Shown one piece after another: positions 45,001 through 58,300 of a stretch of DNA of 64,000 bases (position 1 is the stretch's first letter; every line of letters begins with the position of its first letter). Location of the stretch: NCBI GenBank assembly GCA_002104945.1, contig MCFH01000003.1:620001-684000 (forward strand), written 5' to 3'. The stretch comes from Piromyces finnis finn (lineage: Eukaryota; Fungi; Neocallimastigomycota). The notes beneath the pieces were generated by a model, which was given only the letters and a program-made list of their open reading frames with translations, ran no database searches and was not told the DNA's origin. The position numbers and the translations under genes were made by a program.

Positions 45001-46617
45001 TATAGAAAATCAATTTAAAATTAAAGTATCAAAAAAAAAAAAAATTAATTTAATATATACATATATATATAATATTTTTTTTTAAAAAAATAGTTAATTA
45101 ATAAGATAATTAAAAGATTATTTTTATTATTAATTGATGCATTATAGTATTTTAATTATTTATTTTATAATAAATTATAGATTACATAGATTACATAATA
45201 TAAAAACTGTTGAAAGAAAAAAAAGTTTTTATTCTAGTTTACCATATGAAGAAAAGATAATTTCTTTCTTTCTTTTTTTTTTTTTTAGTATTAGTTGTTT
45301 AATAAGATATCTTTCTAATATAATATTTGATATTAAATATTGTAATTATTATTTATTTTAATGCTATGCATGACTAGAATCATTATTAAGAAAGTAATAG
45401 TATTATTTAAATTTAAAAAAAACTTTTTTTTTTTTTATTTAAAAAAAGGTTAATTTAAAAATGTTTAAATAGTTAGAAAGGATATAGTGTGTTTAATATT
45501 AATGAATATGCAATAATGTATCAATAATAAAGATAAAATTATTTTAATTTATAAAAATAAAAAAATATAATGTGAATATCATGTTATACCCTGAATTTAA
45601 TTAAAATAATAAAATCCATTTACTATATTTAAAAGTAATTTAATAATGGTAATAATATATATATATATATTATATATACATTATTACATGAAATTTTATC
45701 ATATTAATTAAAAGAGTTTAATAGATTGGTAATTCTTCTTTATAGCTATTTGGTTATGTTTGACACTTTCTGAATTTTTCACATTTCTTTAAATTATTAT
45801 TATATTAAAACTTCTTTTTCAATGAGAATATATACTTTTTTTTATATACATAATTATGCATATTAATATTCATTGTATTATTAAAATTTTTAAAAAATGA
45901 TTATAATTATCATTTTCATTATTATTATTATTATTATTATTATTAAGAAACTAATTTTATTATCTTTAACATTATAATATTTTTAAATGAAATGTATTTA
46001 GTTTCTATCAGATAAATTAAATAAAATAAAATAAGAAAAATAATATTAAGTGTGATAATGCGTACTAAATTTCTTTCATAATTCATTAATCATTTTATTC
46101 TATAAATTACAAATATTAAACTTATAAAACAAAACATGTGGGATATTCCTTTACTAAACTTTATCAAATAATAACTAATAAATAATAGGATAATCTTCTT
46201 TATATGGAACATAAGATCCCACAACAAACAATTTATTTCAATTCCTTTACTTCTTCTGATATTATTTTTCATCCTAAACTAATAGTTTACCCTAAAAAAA
46301 TAAGTTAATCTTTTTATGGTGAAAATCATGAATTCTTCATAGGCTGATTTAAAAACTCTTTTTAAAACTCTTTTTTTTTTTAAAAAAAAAAAAAATTAAA
46401 AAACTATCTATTATCTTCTTGAATTATTTTTTTTTTCTAATTCTAAAAACTTTTCAGCGTCAGATTTTTAAAACTACATAATACCTTTTTTTTTTAACTC
46501 TTTATTTTAATTAAAATTTTGATGCATCTATTTAAAATTTAAAATACATTTTGAATATTGAGATCAGTAATAAAAAAAATTTACTTTAGGATGTTTCACA
46601 ATATGCAAAAATACTTG

Positions 46618-47311
46618 TTTTTTAATTTTTTTTTTAATGACATCAAATATTTTAAACTCTATTAATTTAATAATACATGTTGTAAAAACAAAATTAAAAA
46701 TAAAAATTAAAGAAATATGTTTAAATAAACACAAATGAACGAAAATTAGGTATAATGTATTCTAGTAATTAAAATAAGAAAGCCACTATTATACTAAAAT
46801 ATAATAATTGTATTTGACTTCCAATGGGACACCGAGCCAAAGATCAAAATTTTGTCATGAAACAAAATTATGATCTCCATTGGTTGCGCTGGCCCTCTTG
46901 GCCTGTCTTATTGTTTCTTCAGCATTGACGCTCTTGGTTGTTGCTTCAAACCTTTTGAACATTGACCATTGCTGGCTAATAACAAAAGGCATGATTTTGG
47001 TTAGAAGTTCCGCTGTTACCGTCAAGAATGGTGTTCCTTCGTTAGTGCCAGATTGAATCTGACACTTGTAAAGTTTTTTCCATTCCCTTGAATTGTAATT
47101 AATATTGTTAAAACTTCTTCCTCCAAGAAGGAATTTAAACATTTTATTACACACACTAGAATAATCATAAACATTAATATTCACCGGATTATTAGAACTA
47201 TTATTATTATTAACTAAATTACTATCTATATTAAAATGCTTAATACGGATATCTCTAAATATTGGACTACCTAATAACTAATTTTTAATACTTTGATCTC
47301 CACTCTTGCAA

Positions 47312-47313
<2 letters not shown>
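46618..47313 (-). mobile_element. Old, 5'-truncated LINE copy with an internal deletion
   Basis: Homologous to the 3' end of the full-length element but more diverged; lacks about 48241-48475; decayed A tail. Confidence 0.9.
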
Positions 47314-47353
<40 letters not shown>

Positions 47354-47580
47354 CTAGGAAGAGAATACACATCTTATATTCATTTATTTAATTTGAGATA
47401 TTACATAACATTAGGTGATAATACATATTGATATTGATATAATAAATAATAAATAAAAATAATAAAATATATATAAATAAAAATATAAATATAAAATAAT
47501 ATAAAATAATTATTTAAGTTGCATAAAAGTTCAATGAACTCTGCAATCTGTACTGTGTGGGATTGGTCCCTACCTAATAA

Positions 47581-47585
<5 letters not shown>
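47314..47585 (-). mobile_element. About 235-bp retroposed fragment with a 37-nt poly(A) tail (probable 3' end of a second LINE family or a SINE)
   Basis: Unique segment 47351-47585 ends in a T37 run on the + strand and shows no similarity to the flanking LINE 3' UTR. Confidence 0.55.
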
Positions 47586-47629
<44 letters not shown>

Positions 47630-47865
47630 GGCATCAAATATTTTAAACTTTATTATTAATTTAATTAAAATTATAATACATGTAATATAAAAATTAAAAT
47701 AAAATAAAAATAAAAAAAAATATGTTTAAATAAACACAAATGAATAAAAATTGGGTATAATGTATTCTAGTAATTTTAATTAAAGTAAGAAAGCCACTAT
47801 CATACTAAAGTATAATAATTGTATTTGACTTCCAATGGGACACCGAGCCAAAGATCAAAATTTTG

Positions 47866-50800
47866 TCATGGAACAAAATTATGATCTCCATTGGTTGCGC
47901 TGGCCCTCCTGGCCTGTCTTACTGTTTCTTCAGCATTGACGCTCTTGGATGTTGCTTCAAACCTTTTGAACATTGTCCATTGCTGGCCAATAGCAAAAGG
48001 CATGATTTTGGTTAGAAGTTCCGCGGTTACCGTCAAGAATGGTATTCCTTCGTTAGTACCAGATTGAATCTGACGCTTACAAAGTTCTTTCCATTCCCTT
48101 GAATTGTAATTAATATTGTTAAAACTTCTTCCCCCAAGAAGGAATTTAAATATTTCACTGCACACACTAGAATAATCATACACATTAATATTCACCGGAT
48201 TATTAGAACTATTACTATCATTAACTAAATTACTATCTAAATTAGAATTATTATCTTCACTATTGCTATCATTACTAATATTATTATTTCTATTATTGTT
48301 ATTATTACTATTGTTACTATTACTATTGTTACTATTACTATTGTTATTACTACTATTGTTACTATTACTATTAATGTTATTACTATCTCTACTGATATTA
48401 TCAATTTCATTATTATTGATAGGACTATTGGAATTACGTTGACTGAAAAAATTTAATAGCTGGACTATGGAATCATAATGTTTAATACGGATATCTCTAA
48501 ATGTTGGACAATCTAATAACCAATGTTTAATACTTTGATCTCCACACTTGCAACATGGACAGTAGTTAGGACAAACTGGATCAACAAATTTGGCAGCTTT
48601 GGCAACTCTAGCATCCAACTTGTATCCGCTTCTTGCTTTCAATAGCCAGTAGAAGCCATAGGCAAACTCTGGGTATTCATAACATAATTTAATAAAATCT
48701 TTAGTTTCAATAAATTTATTATCATCATAATATTGCGCTTTGATTGAATTCCTTTTGAGATCTTTCCAATAAAAGTTTTTAACTGCTTTAACATCTCCAT
48801 GTTTCTTTAATTTTTTATCAAGTGTCCTACTTGATTTGCACCACGTGTATTTTCTAAATTTAGGAATGTAATTGACAAGGTGTGAGATAATACAATTTGA
48901 GTTTTTCCATTTGTTAAAACATCTAACCTGAGCTAACGCACATTTGGCTGACAATGGAGGAATATTCAAATCTTTTGAGATAGAGTATAAAGATATAAAC
49001 GATACAGCTTTATGAACTCCGGCAACCCATCGTATTCCTTTGTTAACATGCTTCTGAGCAATCCTAGACCTAGCTTTGTTGGATCCAAGTAATGGTGCAA
49101 AGTATGAAACTCTGCTAATCACTTGTGAGTTAAGTACTAGTTTTTTGAAAGGAATAGGAATATTAGGATTTCTTAAGAATTTACTGACTGAGAATAGCCC
49201 TTTCAAAACCTTGTTATTAAGAGCTTTAATAACTGGTTTAAGGGACAGATTCTTATCAAATGGAACACCAAGATAAGTATAGCAATCAGTAGTTGGAATG
49301 GGTTGTCCTGCTAAGTAAAATGTTGGATATCTCTTGTTCTGATTTTCTATTGATTCAGGACGAATCACCATCGTTGAACATTTCTGGATACCAAATTCCA
49401 TTTCATTATACAATGCCCATTCATTAACTCTTCTAAGCATCTTTTTTAAGCATCCTCTTGTTGGAGCACAAATAACTATATCATCTGCAAAAAGTCCACC
49501 ACAGCATCGAGTGTCACCTAAACTGACTCCTAGATCTTCGCACTCTCTAAATATATCATTAATAAAGAGATTAAAGAGAATAGGAGAAAGAGGGCAACCT
49601 TGACGGACTCCTTTCTTCACATCAAAAGATTTCGAGAATTGTCCATCTAATTTGACATTAGCCTTAGATGTTAAATATAAATTTTTGATAAATTGTAGAC
49701 TCTTACCTCGGATTCCTAAACAATCTAATTTATGGAGAATATTACCGATTGGGACTGAATCGTATGCTTTCCTGAGATCTAAAAAGGCCAAATATGTCTC
49801 TTTATTATCTAATTGACGTCTACGGCATATTTCTTGGATTGAAATGAAAAGACTAATACTTTCTTCCTTTTTTCGAAAACCAAATTGTTCAGGTCTAATG
49901 AAATTATTCTTTAAACCATATTCTGAGATTCTAGTGGTGACAATTTTGGAAATCAACTTAATACCATTATTGATAAGTGATATACCTCGATAGTTATCAC
50001 AATCTGTCAAATCTCCCTTCTTAGGAATAGAAACAATACTGGATTCATTCCATGAGTTGGGGAAGTCTCCATCCCAAATACGGTTGAATAATTTAAGAAT
50101 AAAATTTAAACCATGAGCATCATTATCTGAAGTGGTATTACCGGAAGAATTATTATCTGTAGCATTATTAGAATCATTACTTGATGGAATTAATGCTTTG
50201 TAAAATTCAATTGGAATACCATCCGGACCTGATGCTTTATAATTTGGAGTAGAGAGGATAGCTGACTTGACTTCATCAATACTAATATCTTGGTTGATAT
50301 CCCACTCATCAAGCATAGGAAGTGAAAAACGTTTATTCGTTGGTTCTTCATACCAATGCTCCAAATCAAGACTTACACCACTTGGGTCTGATGCAAGATT
50401 TTCGAAATGATCATGCCACACATCTAGTTGTTCTTCCGTAGCAACAACTAATTCTCCATTTTTATTTTTAATTGGTTGAGCAATAAAGAAAGAATCTTTT
50501 CCAATTTTTGCAGTTTTCTTGATCCATTTCCAGGCCTTCTTAGGATTATGACTCTTCATATACTCACATCCTGTTTTAATCCAATGAAGATATTCTTGCT
50601 TCCTAAATTCATTACATCTTTTGTGGATGTAATCAATGAGTTTACGGTAGATTTTAATTCTTTTAATAAATTCATCTATATCATAAACTCTTTCTTTTTT
50701 AAATCTCTTATACAACTTCATTTTGATTTTTTGAAGATTAAAAATTTGTTGTGAAATATGAAATGAAGACTTTATAACATTATTTGCTGAAGTAATACTG

Positions 50801-52389
50801 AGCTCGTCTGCAATTGAAAAAGCAGTTGAAGTAAACTCTTTGGAAAGTTCATCTGTAGAAACATTAGGATCGTTGAATTTTGCTGAAAGAATTTGGAATT
50901 TATTATGACTGAGAATAGATTCCTTTTCCTCAATACATTTTAATCTATTCCATTTCAGAATTTTCTTAGGAACATTAAAGTCATTAGAGAAATCATCCAT
51001 AGGAATAATTTTACCATTAATAAGAAGTGGCTTATGGTCTGATACAGGATAAAAATTATTTATAAATGATCCTGAGTGAATAAGATCTTTCATCTTCGAA
51101 TTGATAAGAGCATGGTCAATGTCGGAAGATTGATCACCTCGAGTCCAAGAGATAGTAGACCCTCTAAGCGGAAGAATTTCCCAATCTCCTAATCCATTAG
51201 TTGATAACCAGTTGGATAATTTTACTTTAGACATATTAAAATCACCAACAAGAATCGATGGATGGGATGAATGAGTTTGTAACCACAAGCGAACTTCTAA
51301 CTTTGCATGATCAACATAGATGTTGTGATGACTATGAGGCATATAAACATTTCCAATCGAGCATTTGAATCTATTCCAGAGACTAAAAGTATAAATAGAA
51401 ATAATATACTTTCCAGAGAAGTTTTCAAGTGAGGCTTGACATGAATTGTGAAAACCTAAATATAAACCTCTCATTCCAGGAACTGATTCGTCAGCTTTCT
51501 TGAAAAAGTGTCTATAGTTTCGCAAAGTAACACGACAAGGATAATCTGTATTCGATCCAGAACCATTACCAGTTTCTTGGAAACATAAAAATAATGGTTT
51601 GAAAATAGCTGTGAAATAGCTAATACTATCTCTCTTTTCGTGATTCCACCCATTGGTGTTCCAACTAAGACAAAAAGAAAAGTTATCAGGCTTGTTGGAT
51701 GAGGAAGAATCGTTGCTATTATTATTATTATTAAAGTCATCGTTATTAATGGATGATGCATCAGAGGAATAAGTAGAACTATTACTAGATGGCTGTGAAG
51801 CTGAAGAACTATCAACTATTGAACTGTTATCAGAGTTGATAGAACTATTAGAATTAATTGTTGAATGTTGAGATTGAAATTGTGTTTGCTGTAGATCTGG
51901 AATATTTTCATGATGGGAAACTTGTTGAAGATCTTGTTGAAGATCTTGTTGAAGATCGGATTGTTGATGAGATTGTTGAACTGATTGTTGAAATGATTGT
52001 AGAATAGAATGTTGATGTTTATTAGAAACTAAAATTTTACGTTTGAGAGTGGAAAAAGTGTATTTGTGATTCCTTCTACTACGAGCTGAAAAGGAAATTG
52101 AGGTAACTGAAAGTTTCTTCTTTAACATGTGTAAGATTTTAATACAATCTTTCGATGAACCATGAACCTTGACTAAGAAAAAGTGATCATTGAAAGTCTG
52201 AAAATATTTAACACTAATAACTGAATTAAATTTATCTTCTAGAATAACCTCGAGTTTTTCCCATAGCATATTTACTGACCATGATCGAATACCACGGATA
52301 AAGAAGGAGCGAATATCATCTAAGGGGATACCATAAGACCGGGTACCACGTCTGATATAATTCTTGTCTTTAATATAAAGGACTGACAT
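47866..52389 (-). CDS. LINE polyprotein: N-terminal RRM-like domain, APE endonuclease, reverse transcriptase and CCHC zinc knuckle
   Basis: 1507 aa with no stops. APE motifs SWNTNG, CFQET, LVGDFN, IDH and SDHKP; RT motifs GVRQGCPLSPILFN, LFADD and YLG; knuckle CPCC...HWLLDC. Confidence 0.95.
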   Translation of the reverse strand: MSVLYIKDKNYIRRGTRSYGIPLDDIRSFFIRGIRSWSVNMLWEKLEVILEDKFNSVISVKYFQTFNDHFFLVKVHGSSKDCIKILHMLKKKLSVTSISFSARSRRNHKYTFSTLKRKILVSNKHQHSILQSFQQSVQQSHQQSDLQQDLQQDLQQVSHHENIPDLQQTQFQSQHSTINSNSSINSDNSSIVDSSSASQPSSNSSTYSSDASSINNDDFNNNNNSNDSSSSNKPDNFSFCLSWNTNGWNHEKRDSISYFTAIFKPLFLCFQETGNGSGSNTDYPCRVTLRNYRHFFKKADESVPGMRGLYLGFHNSCQASLENFSGKYIISIYTFSLWNRFKCSIGNVYMPHSHHNIYVDHAKLEVRLWLQTHSSHPSILVGDFNMSKVKLSNWLSTNGLGDWEILPLRGSTISWTRGDQSSDIDHALINSKMKDLIHSGSFINNFYPVSDHKPLLINGKIIPMDDFSNDFNVPKKILKWNRLKCIEEKESILSHNKFQILSAKFNDPNVSTDELSKEFTSTAFSIADELSITSANNVIKSSFHISQQIFNLQKIKMKLYKRFKKERVYDIDEFIKRIKIYRKLIDYIHKRCNEFRKQEYLHWIKTGCEYMKSHNPKKAWKWIKKTAKIGKDSFFIAQPIKNKNGELVVATEEQLDVWHDHFENLASDPSGVSLDLEHWYEEPTNKRFSLPMLDEWDINQDISIDEVKSAILSTPNYKASGPDGIPIEFYKALIPSSNDSNNATDNNSSGNTTSDNDAHGLNFILKLFNRIWDGDFPNSWNESSIVSIPKKGDLTDCDNYRGISLINNGIKLISKIVTTRISEYGLKNNFIRPEQFGFRKKEESISLFISIQEICRRRQLDNKETYLAFLDLRKAYDSVPIGNILHKLDCLGIRGKSLQFIKNLYLTSKANVKLDGQFSKSFDVKKGVRQGCPLSPILFNLFINDIFRECEDLGVSLGDTRCCGGLFADDIVICAPTRGCLKKMLRRVNEWALYNEMEFGIQKCSTMVIRPESIENQNKRYPTFYLAGQPIPTTDCYTYLGVPFDKNLSLKPVIKALNNKVLKGLFSVSKFLRNPNIPIPFKKLVLNSQVISRVSYFAPLLGSNKARSRIAQKHVNKGIRWVAGVHKAVSFISLYSISKDLNIPPLSAKCALAQVRCFNKWKNSNCIISHLVNYIPKFRKYTWCKSSRTLDKKLKKHGDVKAVKNFYWKDLKRNSIKAQYYDDNKFIETKDFIKLCYEYPEFAYGFYWLLKARSGYKLDARVAKAAKFVDPVCPNYCPCCKCGDQSIKHWLLDCPTFRDIRIKHYDSIVQLLNFFSQRNSNSPINNNEIDNISRDSNNINSNSNNSSNNNSNSNNSNSNNSNNNNNRNNNISNDSNSEDNNSNLDSNLVNDSNSSNNPVNINVYDYSSVCSEIFKFLLGGRSFNNINYNSREWKELCKRQIQSGTNEGIPFLTVTAELLTKIMPFAIGQQWTMFKRFEATSKSVNAEETVRQARRASATNGDHNFVP

Positions 52390-53033
52390 GATAATAAATT
52401 CTAATTAAAAATATTGAATATAAAATAAATACTAATAAAAATTATAAATATAACGTATATGGAAAAAAAAATCTGTCTCTCTCTCTCTTCTTAAAAGTAC
52501 TGGATAGTACAAAAATTGTTACGATGCTTTGTTTAAAGTTTCTTATTTTGAATTCTAGTTGTAAATTTTCTTTAAAAATTCTAGTTTTGGTTTGTTGTTA
52601 GTAAATTCGAATCGCTTTTTGACACTAAACTTGTTTGACTTTACTTTTCATTAAATATTTAAATTGGTAAAAAATTTGAATCAAGAATGTCGACACCAGA
52701 AAGCTTGTGAATAGTATTTTTACATGATGTAGAGTGAATCAGTCTCTTACAAGAAACAATACAACAATAGCTACATGAATATAAAAATACAATGCAAATG
52801 CTAAAGTTGACTACATTGGATTCTTACAAGAGAAGAGTAGTACTACATGAATACATGAATAAAAGAAAAAATACAGCAACAAAATGTATTACTCTTCTAA
52901 TTAAATACTATACAAACTTACCTGAATATCAAACATTCAACTTATTCATCAAATACTTAATTCGATGAATAAAATGTTTATTAATCGCTCAGTACCATGA
53001 GCTTAGTCCTAATAATTTTCCCTTAAAGACTAA

Positions 53034-53208
53034 CCAAGCATCCATTGCGCAATGCTTGGATTTAATTCTTTCTACTCTCTCAGTACCATGAGCATGAGTA
53101 GACCCCCTTGATAAACTCCATTATTAAATAAATGAAGGCACGTTCCTAAGAGGGCACCAAGCATCCATTGCGCAATACTTGGATTTAATTCTTTCTACTC
53201 TCTCAGTA

Positions 53209-53246
<38 letters not shown>

Positions 53247-53593
53247 GGCATCAAATATTATAAACTTTATTATTAATTTAATTAAAATTATAATACATGT
53301 AATAAAAAATTAAAAAATAAAAATAAAAATAAAAAAAATATGTTTAAATAAACACAAATGAATAAAAATTGGGTATAATGTATTCTAGTAATTTTAATTA
53401 AAGTAAGAAAGCCACTATCATACTAAAGTATAATAATTGTATTTGACTTCCAATGGGACACCGAGCCAAAGATCAAAATTTTGTCATGGAACAAAATTAT
53501 GATCTCCATTGGTTGCGCTGGCCCTCCTGGCCTGTCTTACTGTTTCTTCAGCATTGACTCTCAGTACCATGAGCATGAGTAGACCCCCTTGAT
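53034..53593. repeat. 79-nt direct repeat, two copies (53034-53112; 53157-53212 plus 53571-53593), separated by 44 nt
   Basis: Copies differ at one position (g/a in the hairpin stem); the second is split by an insertion. Confidence 0.92.
53213..53558 (-). mobile_element. Young 5'-truncated LINE copy (about 345 bp) with poly(A) tail and 12-bp TSD
   Basis: Nearly identical to 47627-47940; T run 53213-53243; TSD tctcagtaccat at 53201-53212 and 53559-53570. Confidence 0.93.
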
Positions 53594-53698
53594 GGTGTCC
53601 ACTAAATTCTCCCATGAGTTCATAATGTTTTCATTCGAATTTGAATTCCTTATACGTTGATTTTAATTTGATCTTTACTATTTCATCAAAAATAAAAA

Positions 53699-53770
53699 TG
53701 GAGATATCAGGGATCGAACCCGAGGCTTCTTGCATGCAAAGCAAGCACTCTACCACTGAGTTATATCCCC
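53699..53770 (-). tRNA. trnA-UGC: tRNA-Ala (anticodon UGC)
   Basis: GGGGATATAACTCAGTGGTAGAGTGCTTGCTTTGCATGCAAGAAGCCTCGGGTTCGATCCCTGATATCTCCA folds as a cloverleaf with a TTCGA T-loop and is followed by an oligo-T terminator. Confidence 0.96.
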
Positions 53771-54184
53771 AGCTGTTAAAAGTTATTATTACTCACTCCT
53801 ACATTAATTTTATAAGTATTGCTAAATTAAATCTAACCATCTTCAATCAAATTAGTTTAAACATTCCTATAAATATATTTTCATACAAAATTATTAAAAA
53901 AAATTACACTACATCTTTGAAACACAAAATAAACAATTTTTCATATATTTTTTTATAATTTTTAAAGGCTTTTTTATTTATTTTTTTGATTCTTTCGCTT
54001 TATATAAATTTATACATTCTTTAAATTACTTAAACATATAGTTTAGTTATTTAAACTATTGTCTAATTTTCTCTACTTTTATGGGGTGTTTAAATTAAGA
54101 TAAAACTCATTTATTTGAGTTAAAAACTACTATTTGTTTTACAAAATTACTGTAATTAATTTTCTATTAAAATAGTGATTAAAT

Positions 54185-55240
54185 TTAGTTCTTTTCAACC
54201 TTTTGGTTTTCTGGACGGAGGGAACGGACAGTGATAGCAGTTTGCCACATTTGGGATTCACGGAGTTCCTTGAGTTCCTTGGCAAGGTTTTCACGGTAGT
54301 CTGGCTTAGAGTTGGCAACTAAAGTGTTTTCAGCTTCAGTACCGTTTCTAACAGATTCGTATAATTGTTCGAAGACTGGCTTAGTAGCAGCGTAGAACTT
54401 GTCCATCCAGTCGAGGGCACCACGACGGGCAGTAGTGGAACAGTTGTCGTACATCCAGTCCATACCATTCTTACCGACGAGTGGGTAAAGAGATTGAGTA
54501 GCTTCTTCAACAGTTTCGTTGAAAGCTTCAGATGGAGTGTGACCGTTGGCAATTAAAACTTCGAATTGAGCTCTGAAGCAACCTTGGATACAACCCATAA
54601 GAGTACCACGTTCACCAGTAAGGTCAGAGTAGGTTTCTCTTTCGAAGGTAGTTGGGTAAAGGTAACCAGAACCAATAGCAATACCGGCGGCGTAAGCTCT
54701 TTCTTCGGCCTTACCAGAGTAATCTTGGAAGACAGCAACAGAGGAGTTGATACCACGACCTTCTAAGAAAAGAGTACGAACGGTGGTACCGGAACCCTTT
54801 GGAGCAACCATGATAACATCACAGTCTTCTGGTGGGACAACACCAGTCTTTTCCTTGAAGACAATGGAGAAACCGTGGGAGAAGTAAAGGGTCTTTCCGT
54901 GAACTAATTCCTTGATAGTGCTCCAAGCGGCCTTTTGACCAGCATCAGAGAGAAGGTACATGATGATGGTACCCTTTTGACAGGCTTCGGTGATTTCGAA
55001 AAGAGATTCACCTTCAACCCAACCGTCTTCCTTGGCAAGATCCCAAGATGGACCCTTACGAAGACCAATGATAACCTTGAAACCCTTGTCTCTTAAGTTA
55101 CGGGATTGGTTACGACCTTGAGTACCATAACCGATGACGGTGAAAACATCATCCTTGAAGATTTCGTTAAGCTTTTCTTGTGGGAAATCAGCTCTTTCGT
55201 AAACGGTTTCTTCAACACCACCAAAGTTAATAAGTTTCAT
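54185..55240 (-). CDS. ILV5: Ketol-acid reductoisomerase (acetohydroxyacid reductoisomerase)
   Basis: Motifs VIGYGTQG, YFSHGF, MVAPKGSG and SDLTGERGTLMG; intronless; strong C-ending codon bias; no N-terminal presequence. Confidence 0.96.
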   Translation of the reverse strand: MKLINFGGVEETVYERADFPQEKLNEIFKDDVFTVIGYGTQGRNQSRNLRDKGFKVIIGLRKGPSWDLAKEDGWVEGESLFEITEACQKGTIIMYLLSDAGQKAAWSTIKELVHGKTLYFSHGFSIVFKEKTGVVPPEDCDVIMVAPKGSGTTVRTLFLEGRGINSSVAVFQDYSGKAEERAYAAGIAIGSGYLYPTTFERETYSDLTGERGTLMGCIQGCFRAQFEVLIANGHTPSEAFNETVEEATQSLYPLVGKNGMDWMYDNCSTTARRGALDWMDKFYAATKPVFEQLYESVRNGTEAENTLVANSKPDYRENLAKELKELRESQMWQTAITVRSLRPENQKVEKN

Positions 55241-55320
55241 CTTGAATGAATTTAATGTATATAAATAATTTATACAATAAAAATTTTGTGAAATTTTTAA
55301 TTTTTTGTGGAAATCTTCTT

Positions 55321-55327
55321 ATTTATA
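55321..55327 (-). promoter_or_regulatory. Possible TATA box of ILV5
   Basis: TATAAAT about 80 bp upstream of the ATG, with a CCAAT near 55438. Weak evidence in an AT-rich background. Confidence 0.25.
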
Positions 55328-58300
55328 TGGGTCATAATTTTTTAATTTTAATGATTTGTTCAAATTTTTTTCTAAAACTATAATATATTACAATATATTT
55401 AATTATATTACTTAATAAAATTATATAAAATATTAACCAATCATATTCATGGATATATTTGATATTACAAATTTTCATTATAATAAAAAAAAATATTTTT
55501 TTATTCAATCAAATTCATAATTTTATTTATAGTAATATATAATTATATATAATATAGATATATAAATAAATATATTTTCGATTATTATTAATTTATTAAT
55601 TATAATAAAAAAATTTAAAATTTGCAAAAAAAAAAAAAAAATTTTGAATAATGTTTGGTTATTTTTTAGGCTATTTTGTGGTTTGTGATGCCTTGAGTAA
55701 AAGTAATTGTTTTTATTATTGTGAAAGTGAAATAGTGTGAACTTTTAATTTTTATTATTTAAAATATAAATAAATGGTTCATTAATTAATTAAATGAATA
55801 AATAGTAAATTATTAAATAAATAATTTATTAAGTAAATAAATGAATAAATAATAAATTATTAAATAAATGTATTATTAATTAATTAAATGAATATATATA
55901 AGTTGAAATAAAAAAAAAAGTTTGTTATTAGTATTGCTATTTAATATGGATAATGTTAATTTTAACCGAATATTACACTTTTTTGTTTTTAAAATAAGAT
56001 ATTTTTTATTTTTGTCGAGGCTTTTTTCAACCAAAATGTACCTTATCGGATCAATAACAAAAAAAAATTAATAAATTTTAATGTATATAAAAAAAGCATA
56101 ATTAAATTTATGTGTTATGATTTTTTTTTAATAAATTATGACATGTGGATGATAAAAATTTAATTATGAATTTTAATGTAGCAACATGTTTTTTTTAAAA
56201 AAGAATATTAAAATTATGACAATATTATTAATAAAAAATATTATTATCCTTATTATTTTAGTAATGTTGGTGTAAAAGATATATGGAATTTTGAAACAAT
56301 CTTTAAATAATACATTTCTTTTATCAATTAAATATATTGATTCTATAAGGAATAGATGTGATTTAAAAAATGATCAATATCAATATATATGTATATTCAA
56401 ATAATTTCTTTTTTCGTATATTTAATATAATAATTATTAATGGTATAATATAAAAAAATAATAAATATACAAACATAAATAATAACATCATTAGTTTACT
56501 TTTTTAATAATAATAAATACTTTAGGATTATTATTCTTTCTTTCTTTTTTTTTTTTTTTCTTTTTAATCTTTAACACTTTTTATACTAGTGTATTTAAAT
56601 AAAATATAAGAAATAAAAATTGATGGGTTAGGGATTACTGTAGATTAATTAATATAAAAAATTTATTTTTTAAAATGTACCATTTCAAACTTCAATTAAA
56701 ATAATTTAGTTTGCGTTTAAGAATAATTATCAGAAAGGTTTTAATTTCCTCATATAGTGTAATAATATAACATTGTTTAGCTTTAGATTACTTATGAAAG
56801 AAAAAGTAATAAATATTTCAACTTTTTCAAAAAATGTCATTTTTTATTGATATGATGTAAAGTATTAGAATTACATTTTATTATATGCTATACCTATACT
56901 TTTTTTCTTTATTTAAATACTAAAAAATTTTTACAGTATTTAATCTTTTGTTTTGTGTAATTACCAGTTATAAAACAAAGGATTTCAATATAATTATACA
57001 ATTTTTATTGATATTCAACAGTGTAATTGATGAGAAATAAAAAGGATTATATAACACCTTATTCTATGTAATATATTTTCATTAATATTTAATTATTTCG
57101 GTAATTAATTATGTAATAGTTGTATTTTAGGTATACATAATACTTTTTATTTTTATATCATTATTATATTATTATATTTTATAATTTTTCTTTTTTCTTT
57201 TCATTTTTTTCTTTCTTTAAATGAAGAAGGATTTAAGTTGAACCATTTCTTATTTCTAATTTTGGTAGTTCCTGGCCAATAATAAAGTTACACAAGTAAG
57301 TTAATATTGTTTTTTTAAATTTGTTTTTTTATGAAAATTAATAAAGTTTATTGCTATTTTTTTAAAAAATTATATTTAATATGTAAATAATAATTAAATA
57401 GAAACTATTGATGATTATATAAAATGAATATAAACATAATATATAAAACTTTAAACTAGTTTATTTTAATTATGGACAAAATAAATATAATTTTTCATTA
57501 CTTTTTATTATTTATTTTCTATATAATAGACAAAAAATATTAATATGGTTTACTTTTTATTATTCCTTTTCTATATACTTTATTATTATTATTGTAGTAA
57601 TTATCATTTGATATAAAGTTATTAATATTATTAATATTGTCACTTTTTAGGTAAAACTTCTTTTTTAATTTTTTTGTTTCCCATCTTGAAAGATATTGAT
57701 ATGAAATTAATATGTCTAGCTACATATTAGCCAATATTTAAAATAATTTTTATTATTTAAAATATTCAATTTCATCTTTAGAAATTTATATATAATATTT
57801 CATAATAATAATATAATAATTGATATATATTATAATACATTATTTATATATTAGTTATAGAATTCATGTACATATTTCATTATATTCTTAAATATTAATA
57901 TTATATATTAGTATTAATTTTATTGTAATACTTATTTGTATTACATTACCTTTCCTTATATAGTAATATTTCATATAAAATGTAAAATATATTATACTAT
58001 ATCCTATTTAATTATTATTCATATATTATGAATACATTACATTATATAATTGATATTCAATTATATTATAGGAATTTTATAATATAAAAATATTCATGTA
58101 AAAAATAATTAATAATTAGAAAGGGAAGAGCTTTAATAATTAATAAGAAAATATTATAAGTGAAATTATTAATAAGAGAGAAGTTAATAGTAATAAAATA
58201 TTTTTCACCTAATATAATAAATTATAAATAAACTAATATTAAATTACTACAACATAAAAGAAACTTATATCAATATATTATTCACATGACTTTTTAATAG

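Follow-up and report, generated by a model that had tools for sequence, protein, structure and literature searches.

A short tandem array of three-hairpin units at the 5′ end of a LINE from Piromyces finnis: a probable structured leader or promoter unit

Results

A full-length LINE lies downstream of a tRNA-Ala gene

The window analysed here is a 64,000-nt stretch of Piromyces finnis DNA (contig MCFH01000003.1, positions 620,001 to 684,000 of the forward strand), and all coordinates below are counted from its first letter. Within it, a pile-up of LINE copies begins 3′ of a tRNA-Ala gene and shares the orientation of the tRNA. The full-length LINE runs from 53593 to 47586 on the minus strand, about 105 nt downstream of the tRNA-Ala gene. 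Its leader contains repeated units built from two hairpins, termed hpA and hpB. The features of the locus, in minus-strand order, are listed here; LINE families are lettered by their 5′ ends, as described further below.

53698 to 53771, minus strand: tRNA-Ala(UGC) gene followed by a T-run (ARAGORN; Rfam tRNA, 66.6 bits)
53594 to 53632, minus strand: left remnant of an older 5′-truncated family C LINE (last ORF codons), with matches to loci L002 and L029/L030
53558 to 53593, minus strand: first part of unit 1, with the 5′ terminus of the LINE copy, AUCAAGGGGGU, the 5′ half of hpA and the first copy of a target duplication (53569-53558)
53212 to 53557, minus strand: nested 346-nt, 5′-truncated copy of the same LINE (last 23 codons, 3′ UTR, 32-nt poly(A))
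53157 to 53211, minus strand: second copy of the target duplication (53211-53200) and second part of unit 1, with the 3′ half of hpA, and hpB carrying a U.G pair (53199-53157)
53113 to 53156, minus strand: 44-nt spacer with U, GCCCUCUU and a CUUCAUU/AAUGGAG hairpin; forms helix H1 with AAGGGGGU of unit 2
53034 to 53112, minus strand: unit 2, an intact 79-nt module with AAGGGGGU, hpA (two-tier, loop UGGUAC) and hpB (loop UGCGCAAUGG)
52931 to 53033, minus strand: older, diverged third monomer with a UUAGUCUU/AGGACUAA helix, a GCUCA-UGGUAC-UGAGC hairpin (53002-52987) and a 49-nt AU-rich hairpin (52979-52931)
52710 to 52871, minus strand: UGUA-rich block of the 5′ UTR, outside the hairpin repeat, its sequence kept across LINE families
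47866 to 52389, minus strand: single LINE ORF of 1507 aa (ferredoxin-like N-terminus, APE-type endonuclease, reverse transcriptase, C-terminal Cys/His motif)
47586 to 47865, minus strand: 3′ UTR and 41-nt poly(A) (47626-47586) of the full-length LINE
47350 to 47585, minus strand: right remnant of the older family C LINE (3′ UTR and poly(A)), continuing the left remnant

The flanks of the full-length copy come from a single older element. The 26 nt directly before unit 1 are the last ORF codons of a family C LINE (locus L002): positions 53619-53593 match L002 5077-5103 at 92.6% identity, with the match running one ambiguous base into the LINE, and 53632-53593 also matches L029/L030. At the other end, the 236 nt past the LINE poly(A) align to the 3′ UTR of L002 (74% identity over 275 nt, E 5e-37). 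The older LINE lacks about 41 nt at the insertion junction, and no target duplication is visible around the full-length insertion (53593..47586). On the evidence of these alignments, we conclude that 53593..47586 entered, as a single discrete insertion, the tail of a family C LINE that is older and severely truncated. Since one older LINE tail supplies both flanks, the LINE copy has its true 5′ end at unit 1. An initial annotation, made from the letters of the window, had placed the hairpin region at a LINE 5′ end, and the boundary is now shown directly.

The 767-nt leader of this copy contains 14 upstream AUGs, the number predicted from its composition. This makes it unlikely that ribosomes reach the ORF by ordinary scanning, and the structured leader may also have a part in translation. 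The N-terminal 105 aa of the ORF form a generic ferredoxin-like fold. Since no specific RNA-binding relative came to light, this domain lends no support to a protein partner; a ferredoxin-like domain neither supports nor excludes RNA binding.

The repeat period of the leader is 123 nt

The nested insertion aligns near-identically to positions 47945-47586, that is, to the 3′ end of the full-length LINE, and a 12-nt direct repeat, TGGTACTGAGAG, stands on both sides of it (53569-53558 and 53211-53200). We conclude from this combination that the nested 346 nt are a 5′-truncated daughter of the same LINE, which landed in the hpA loop of unit 1. When the insertion and one copy of the direct repeat are dropped, units 1 and 2 differ at only 1 of 79 positions, a U/C difference in hpB that gives a U.G pair in one unit and a C-G pair in the other. 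The 14-mer CTCATGGTACTGAG occurs three times (0.01 expected) and the hpB 26-mer twice (0 expected). The two-unit layout that the initial annotation had read on the minus strand after removal of the insertion was correct in every sequence detail.

The stretch past unit 2 aligns to the spacer together with unit 2: GCTCATGGTACTGAG is identical, and the remainder is recognisable but AT-enriched. The leader thus comprises one 5′-truncated, one complete and one old monomer. The 49-nt hairpin of the third monomer stands at the position of hpB with its register shifted, so it does not represent strict covariation. The period of the repeat is 123 nt, the sum of the 44-nt spacer and the 79-nt module, and tandem copies of the hairpin unit span the first ~330 bases of the LINE. 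This is the arrangement of a LINE 5′ UTR monomer array, in which units follow one another head-to-tail from the 5′ terminus of a full-length LINE and precede the ORF.

The 79-nt module had been put forward as the duplicated unit. The repeat itself is present, but 79 nt marks a duplication boundary. Judged from the sequence, the functional unit is the 123-nt monomer, because GCCCUCUU...AAGGGGGU matches the first helix of related families that carry the domain in single copy. In this arrangement AAGGGGGU most naturally pairs with the upstream GCCCUCUU as a first hairpin, comparable to the one that opens the domain in the single-copy families. An alternative reading, in which AAGGGGGU of unit 1 pairs with GCCCUCUU to close a three-way-junction or tRNA-like fold, was rejected as an artefact of the duplication; the single-copy families have three consecutive hairpins.

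Both strands of the leader fold better than shuffled sequences

All of the hairpins listed in the initial annotation pair, with five G.U pairs and no mismatch. Among them, the third GCUCA(UGGUAC)UGAGC hairpin and the bulged hairpin are both present, the latter being the 49-nt hairpin at 52979-52931, which is retained in the minimum-energy fold. The palindrome ATTGCGCAAT, which had been reported to overlap hpB, is found in both copies of hpB.

The same annotation described the RNA as strand-specific. Its five G.U stem pairs on the LINE-sense strand are confirmed, and the sense fold of the minus strand contains 10 G.U pairs, as compared with 2 in the plus-strand fold. However, the minus strand is rich in G and U (0.56), and both strands fold better than shuffles: the minus strand at -83.7 kcal/mol (z -4.5) and the plus strand at -68.8 kcal/mol (z -6.0). 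Across LINE families, there was no consistent strand difference in fold stability. The strand asymmetry thus exists but does not settle the matter. That the listed helices have five G.U pairs and no A.C pair favours an RNA on the LINE strand, with the caveat that the helices had been picked on that strand.

A hairpin domain marks the 5′ ends of several related LINE families

Using the N-terminal 500 aa of the ORF as query, we identified 21 protein clusters at 39-67% identity; an Anaeromyces robustus protein sits in one related cluster. From the protein clusters and a protein-guided metagenome scan, we fetched 36 loci and sorted the elements by their 5′ ends into families A (the LINE of the window), B1, B2, C, D, E, F and G. 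The six families other than A come from gut-fungus metagenomes, and with A they make up the seven that were compared. A second copy of the window's own family was not found among the metagenome contigs by a search for the exact hpA DNA pattern, no exact protein record of the ORF exists, and a protein-guided scan of bacterial and archaeal genomes returned no relatives.

In all families, a UGUA-rich block of conserved sequence lies 200-350 nt from the 5′ end. Upstream of this block the families are almost wholly different in sequence: local alignment of 5′ ends between families was not significant, and a covariance model built from family B finds family B alone, not A or C. The 5′ termini of families B and C can nevertheless be placed exactly. 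In family B, CCCCUAGC / CCCCUAGCAGGGG starts all four loci, and in family C, CCCCUCC / CCCCUCCGGGG starts four loci, preceded by 0-2 variable bases; in both cases the upstream flanks are unrelated. In both families the terminal C-run forms the 5′ strand of a helix that a G-run closes, such that eight independent insertions begin with an exact 5′-terminal helix. This helix is followed by a two-tier hairpin and then by a third hairpin. A three-hairpin layout at a mapped 5′ end is common to families A, B and C. Tandem amplification is found in two of the seven families, A and G, the latter with a duplicated 5′ region in L033. The family D contig is cut at the 5′ end.

The loops of these hairpins are in part shared. 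The apical loop of the second hairpin is UCAGUAC in family B. In family C the H2 loop is GGUACGG in L002 alone and GGUGCGG in L023, L034, L035 and the 5′-cut L036. An invariant GUAC loop was accordingly discarded as a family-wide feature, since GUGC stands in three of the four family C copies that reach the loop and in L036, and since related loci have GTAC-loop hairpins at a frequency of 0.52 per kb. The loop of the third hairpin of family C, UGCGCAAUG, is that of hpB on another stem, with three pair changes scored by eye. The chance that two 230-nt sequences share a 9-mer with at least five G/C is 0.012.

The 5′ domain also stands out by composition and stability. In a genome of 17-25% GC, the first 150 nt of five of the seven families (A, B, C, D and G) have a GC content of 0.37-0.40 and z-scores of -1.6 to -4.5, whereas later windows mostly have z-scores of -1 to +2 and a GC content of 0.2-0.3. 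Exceptions to the low stability of later windows are two in the leader's repeat array, directly after the first, together with the second of L023 and one within the ORF of L015. No excess stability was seen in the first 150 nt of families E and F.

Compensatory change was scored in family B, whose alignment is effectively two lineages (B1 and B2). Of its 44 pairs, two show double compensatory changes and seven one-sided G.U transitions; 95.7% of cells are paired, as compared with ~50% when partners are slid, and 14 of 500 shuffles reach the covariation score. The internal loops of H2 are wholly different between B1 and B2, with the stems kept. H3 is invariant among family C copies. Support from covariation in these alignments appears real but thin. 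A structured leader, as the initial annotation had suggested, is nonetheless consistent with the related families, which have a stable, GC-richer 5′ hairpin domain (exactly placed in B and C), some compensatory changes and, in one family, the hpB loop.

The hairpin domain matches no described ribozyme class

The leader had also been proposed as a new ribozyme. For this we found no support: it has no Rfam match, no threadable HDV-like or hammerhead core and no conserved unpaired core. An Rfam search of window positions 46000-56000 at E<=10 returned tRNA only and no ribozyme family, the HDV, CPEB3 and drz-Agam models included, and the 5′ ends of nine related loci gave no match at E<=5. These searches agree with the earlier attempt by eye, which had failed to fit the sequence to known ribozyme consensuses. 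By hand, an HDV-like fold could not be threaded onto families A, B and C: all have P1-like helices, but there is no 3′ strand of P2 to pair with the few nucleotides that follow P1, and the P3-like hairpin, which should stack directly on the P1 3′ strand, lies 2-7 nt away from it. A relaxed HDV-like script descriptor was uninformative, since it matched 100% of shuffles. For the hammerhead, C, AAGAAUUAAAU and U make up the strands of the junction, with no CUGANGA...GAAA core and no Rfam match. Twister, twister-sister, pistol, hatchet and hairpin ribozymes gave no match to the Rfam models. A minimal twister-sister-like motif of LINE-1 needs internal loops of 5 and 6 nt and a CA site (PMC11620745), unlike the hpA internal loop, which has 3 nt on one side and 1 nt on the other.

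Tertiary contacts and other RNA classes fared no better. Kissing between the loops of H1 and H2 (GUGCC:GGUAC, CGUAC:GUACG, CCGUA:UACGG) was no better than chance (P 0.29-0.77), and the families have no conserved set of unpaired nucleotides in common. A tRNA or tRNA-derived origin of the module was rejected: ARAGORN gives the tRNA-Ala at 53771-53698 alone, and the Rfam tRNA model misses the module. Inspection of hpA by eye found no K-turn or box C/D features. GAUGA...CUGA motifs are present in families D-G.

Discussion

A probable leader and promoter monomer

The explanation that we favour, with moderate confidence and partly by analogy, is that the repeated region is a conserved structured 5′ leader and promoter monomer of a single-ORF, APE-type LINE, rather than a ribozyme of a described class. 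The leader is built of 123-nt monomers in a short tandem array, each copy with three hairpins: H1, formed by GCCCUCUU...AAGGGGGU around a small hairpin; hpA, two-tiered with a UGGUAC loop; and hpB with its UGCGCAAUGG loop. This domain would be the element's 5′ cis-acting unit. As DNA, it may serve as an internal promoter downstream of the start site, of the kind that all LINEs need, with tandem copies raising output; this putative promoter role is suggested by its position, by the tendency to duplicate (families A and G) and by analogy with other LINEs. As RNA, the hairpins would make up a stable domain close to the cap, with conserved loops that the LINE's own protein or a host factor probably recognises. 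The presence of a single such domain at the exact 5′ ends of related LINEs makes a real structured leader or promoter unit probable; since both strands fold better than shuffles, inverted repeats acting at the DNA level are also a possible account of the region.

Known LINE 5′ ends offer partial parallels. In mouse L1 (A, Tf and Gf), head-to-tail monomers of ~200 bp lie at the extreme 5′ end, upstream of the ORF, and are defined by transcription-factor sites. As in mouse L1, short units are repeated here at a LINE 5′ end, led by a truncated one, with the older ones decaying downstream. The unit here, however, is 123 nt, has three stem-loops and is a putative promoter, whereas the mouse monomers are not defined by conserved hairpins. 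The A-module of Dictyostelium TRE5-A is the 200-bp promoter of a LINE that targets tRNA genes (PMC3159450), and thus likewise a short 5′-terminal module of a LINE living beside tRNA genes. The two modules have no sequence similarity. TRE5-A, an element with two ORFs, inserts upstream of tRNA genes; its A-module could be exchanged for another promoter, and no RNA structure has been described for the module. L1Tc of Trypanosoma cruzi is, like the present element, a single-ORF APE LINE, and the first ~77 nt of L1Tc (Pr77/L1TcRz) act as both an internal promoter and a ribozyme RNA (PMC3383444, PMC3185411). Its 5′ end is thus a model for dual use as DNA and RNA. L1TcRz is HDV-like, whereas the leader here has no Rfam HDV match and cannot be threaded onto the double pseudoknot. 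R2, with its HDV-like ribozyme and protein-binding 5′ RNA, has a structured RNA at the exact 5′ end of its transcript, with the first nucleotide in a helix (PMC3774820). R2 is otherwise set apart by its restriction-like endonuclease, its location in rDNA, its nested pseudoknot and its catalytic C, none of which we found here.

Alternative explanations

The 5′-end position and tandem duplication of the monomer would also suit a promoter that acts at the DNA level only, with its palindromes being dimeric transcription-factor sites and its RNA hairpins having no role of their own. In keeping with this, ATTGCGCAAT is identical to what we take to be the optimal C/EBP-type bZIP site, a GGTAC core is also present, TGCGCAATG is sequence-conserved between families A and C, and, measured against shuffles, the plus strand folds no worse than the sense strand, with no consistent strand difference across families. 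Nonetheless, we consider this account unlikely. The pattern of change is the reverse of that of dimeric sites, in that the centre is kept while the arms change yet stay complementary (A versus C by eye; B1 versus B2); the centre of the hpB stem lies 2 nt off the centre of the ATTGCGCAAT palindrome; and all five non-Watson-Crick pairs of the helices are G.U on the sense strand. A purely incidental origin, in which the inverted repeats are carried by a recent duplication that arose as a by-product of template switching by reverse transcriptase at the 5′ end, is less probable still. It would account for the 98.7% identity of the young units, which means that the hairpins shared by units 1 and 2 count as one observation, and it sits well with the frequency of GTAC-loop hairpins in related loci and with the weakness of the covariation. 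It is harder to reconcile with a stable, GC-richer first 150 nt in most families of an AT-rich genome, with exact 5′-terminal helices in eight independent insertions, and with the conservation of stems while loops diverge in family B.

Two other readings receive less weight from us. Palindromic loops such as UGCGCA and GUAC might kiss between two LINE RNAs and so act as a dimerisation or packaging signal, and hpB does have an 8-bp stem and a 10-nt loop that holds a 6-nt palindrome, with the loop sequence kept in family C and with UUCGAA inside an H3 loop of family B2. The DIS hairpin of HIV-1 is a similar stem-loop, with a 6-nt palindrome in a 9-10-nt loop; it is retroviral and not homologous, and dimerisation has no known role in LINEs. 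The H3 loop of family B1, however, has no such palindrome, the majority GUGC loop of family C is not palindromic, and we know of no LINE that needs RNA dimers, such that this role seems very unlikely. It is equally hard to credit that the leader is a self-cleaving ribozyme of a new class that frees the LINE RNA from upstream read-through transcripts, a release that HDV-like ribozymes perform in R2, RTE and L1Tc elements. In families B and C a helix does start with the first nucleotides of the element as its 5′ strand, a G.U pair opens GCCCUCUU/AAGGGGGU in family A, and the copies lie head-to-tail behind other LINEs, where co-transcription is possible. Against this stand the lack of any Rfam ribozyme match in the window or the nine loci, the failure of HDV threading in A, B and C, the absence of a CUGANGA...GAAA core from A, the lack of unpaired nucleotides kept between families, and H1-H2 loop complementarity at chance level. 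Moreover, the helix-opening G is nucleotide 81 rather than nucleotide 1 once the insertion and one target duplication are removed. Taken more broadly, there is a slim chance that the domain of three hairpins acts as a catalytic or guide RNA of a new kind: either an undescribed self-cleaving motif that would release LINE RNA from head-to-tail or read-through transcripts, or a 5′ RNA that the LINE protein would have to bind for integration beside tRNA genes to be completed.

Implications for LINEs of gut fungi

A repeated, structured LINE 5′ leader is a known kind of feature; the hairpin architecture described here is new. We found no papers describing LINEs of anaerobic gut fungi. To our knowledge, the start signals of LINEs lie inside the transcript and are hardly known outside mammals, insects and trypanosomes. 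Interest in the present domain would be modest unless cleavage or a specific RNA-protein step were shown. On the reading that we favour, a conserved structured leader and promoter monomer, the domain provides a concrete candidate promoter and leader for a LINE group that lives beside tRNA genes, and its natural variants, in which loops are kept and stems changed, would be useful for separating function at the DNA level from function at the RNA level.

Conserved elements in the LINE 5′ region

More conserved than the hairpin domain (the 5′-terminal leader of tandem 123-nt monomers) is a separate block in the 5′ UTR:

52710-52871, minus strand: UGUA-rich 5′ UTR block, conserved in sequence

This block contains YAUGUAG and CUUGUAAGA repeats, followed by GAUUCACUCUA, and its UGUA density is 6-10 motifs per 160 nt. 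A counterpart is present in the related LINE loci L001, L004, L005, L007, L010, L011, L015, L023, L028, L032 and L033, and the block is retained among LINE families whose proteins are only ~45% identical; its conservation exceeds that of the hairpin domain. We consider the block a candidate protein-binding or promoter element. The 767-nt leader (window 52390-53156, minus strand) contains 14 upstream AUGs, each of which starts a uORF of 1-18 codons, and upstream AUGs in this leader are not depleted relative to composition.

The 5′ regions of LINE families D-G carry a different motif pair, GAUGA(A/G)G ... UCUGA(A/G)G, located between complementary C-rich and G-rich runs:

L005, 27-59: motif pair
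L015, 788-817: motif pair
L032, 438-465: motif pair
L033, 86-110: motif pair

By eye, the pair resembles box C and box D, with putative tandem sheared G.A pairs in a K-turn-like arrangement; Rfam gave no snoRNA match at these sites. The 5′ region of family G also contains a tandem duplication of its own, ~50 nt long (L033, ~91-190), which shows that 5′ duplications are recurrent in this LINE group.

LINE protein and 3′ end

52045-52389, minus strand: conserved N-terminal domain, residues 1-115 encoded by the LINE ORF

An AlphaFold2 model of this domain (pLDDT 81) has a beta-alpha-beta-beta-alpha-beta, ferredoxin/RRM-like fold, for which PDB matches were to the generic fold only. Immediately 3′ of the LINE stop codon is a short GC-richer stretch, UUUGAUCUUUGGCUCGGUGUCCCAUUGGAAGUCAAA (47800-47865, minus strand, and 53480-53545), which looks like a 3′ stem-loop. 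One LINE protein of family C, P0050 (in the cluster of P0018), is recorded as MBR5954469.1, ‘MAG: endonuclease/exonuclease/phosphatase family protein [Methanobrevibacter sp.]’; the record probably derives from a contig of fungal origin that was binned with an archaeal genome by mistake.

LINE insertions beside tRNA-Ala

46618-53771: nested LINE pile-up, all in one orientation, downstream of tRNA-Ala

Just upstream of the tRNA-Ala is an intact ketol-acid reductoisomerase gene with KARI_N and KARI_C domains (54185-55240, minus strand). On the other side, an old family-C tail starts at most ~66 nt from the tRNA-Ala, and the full-length LINE lies within this tail, ~105 nt from the tRNA-Ala. The 346-nt truncated daughter copy is ~36 nt beyond the start of the full-length LINE, and the sequence from ~47313 downward, past the family-C poly(A), is a fragment of another LINE ORF. 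This layout is consistent with LINEs integrating 3′ of tRNA genes at a fixed distance.
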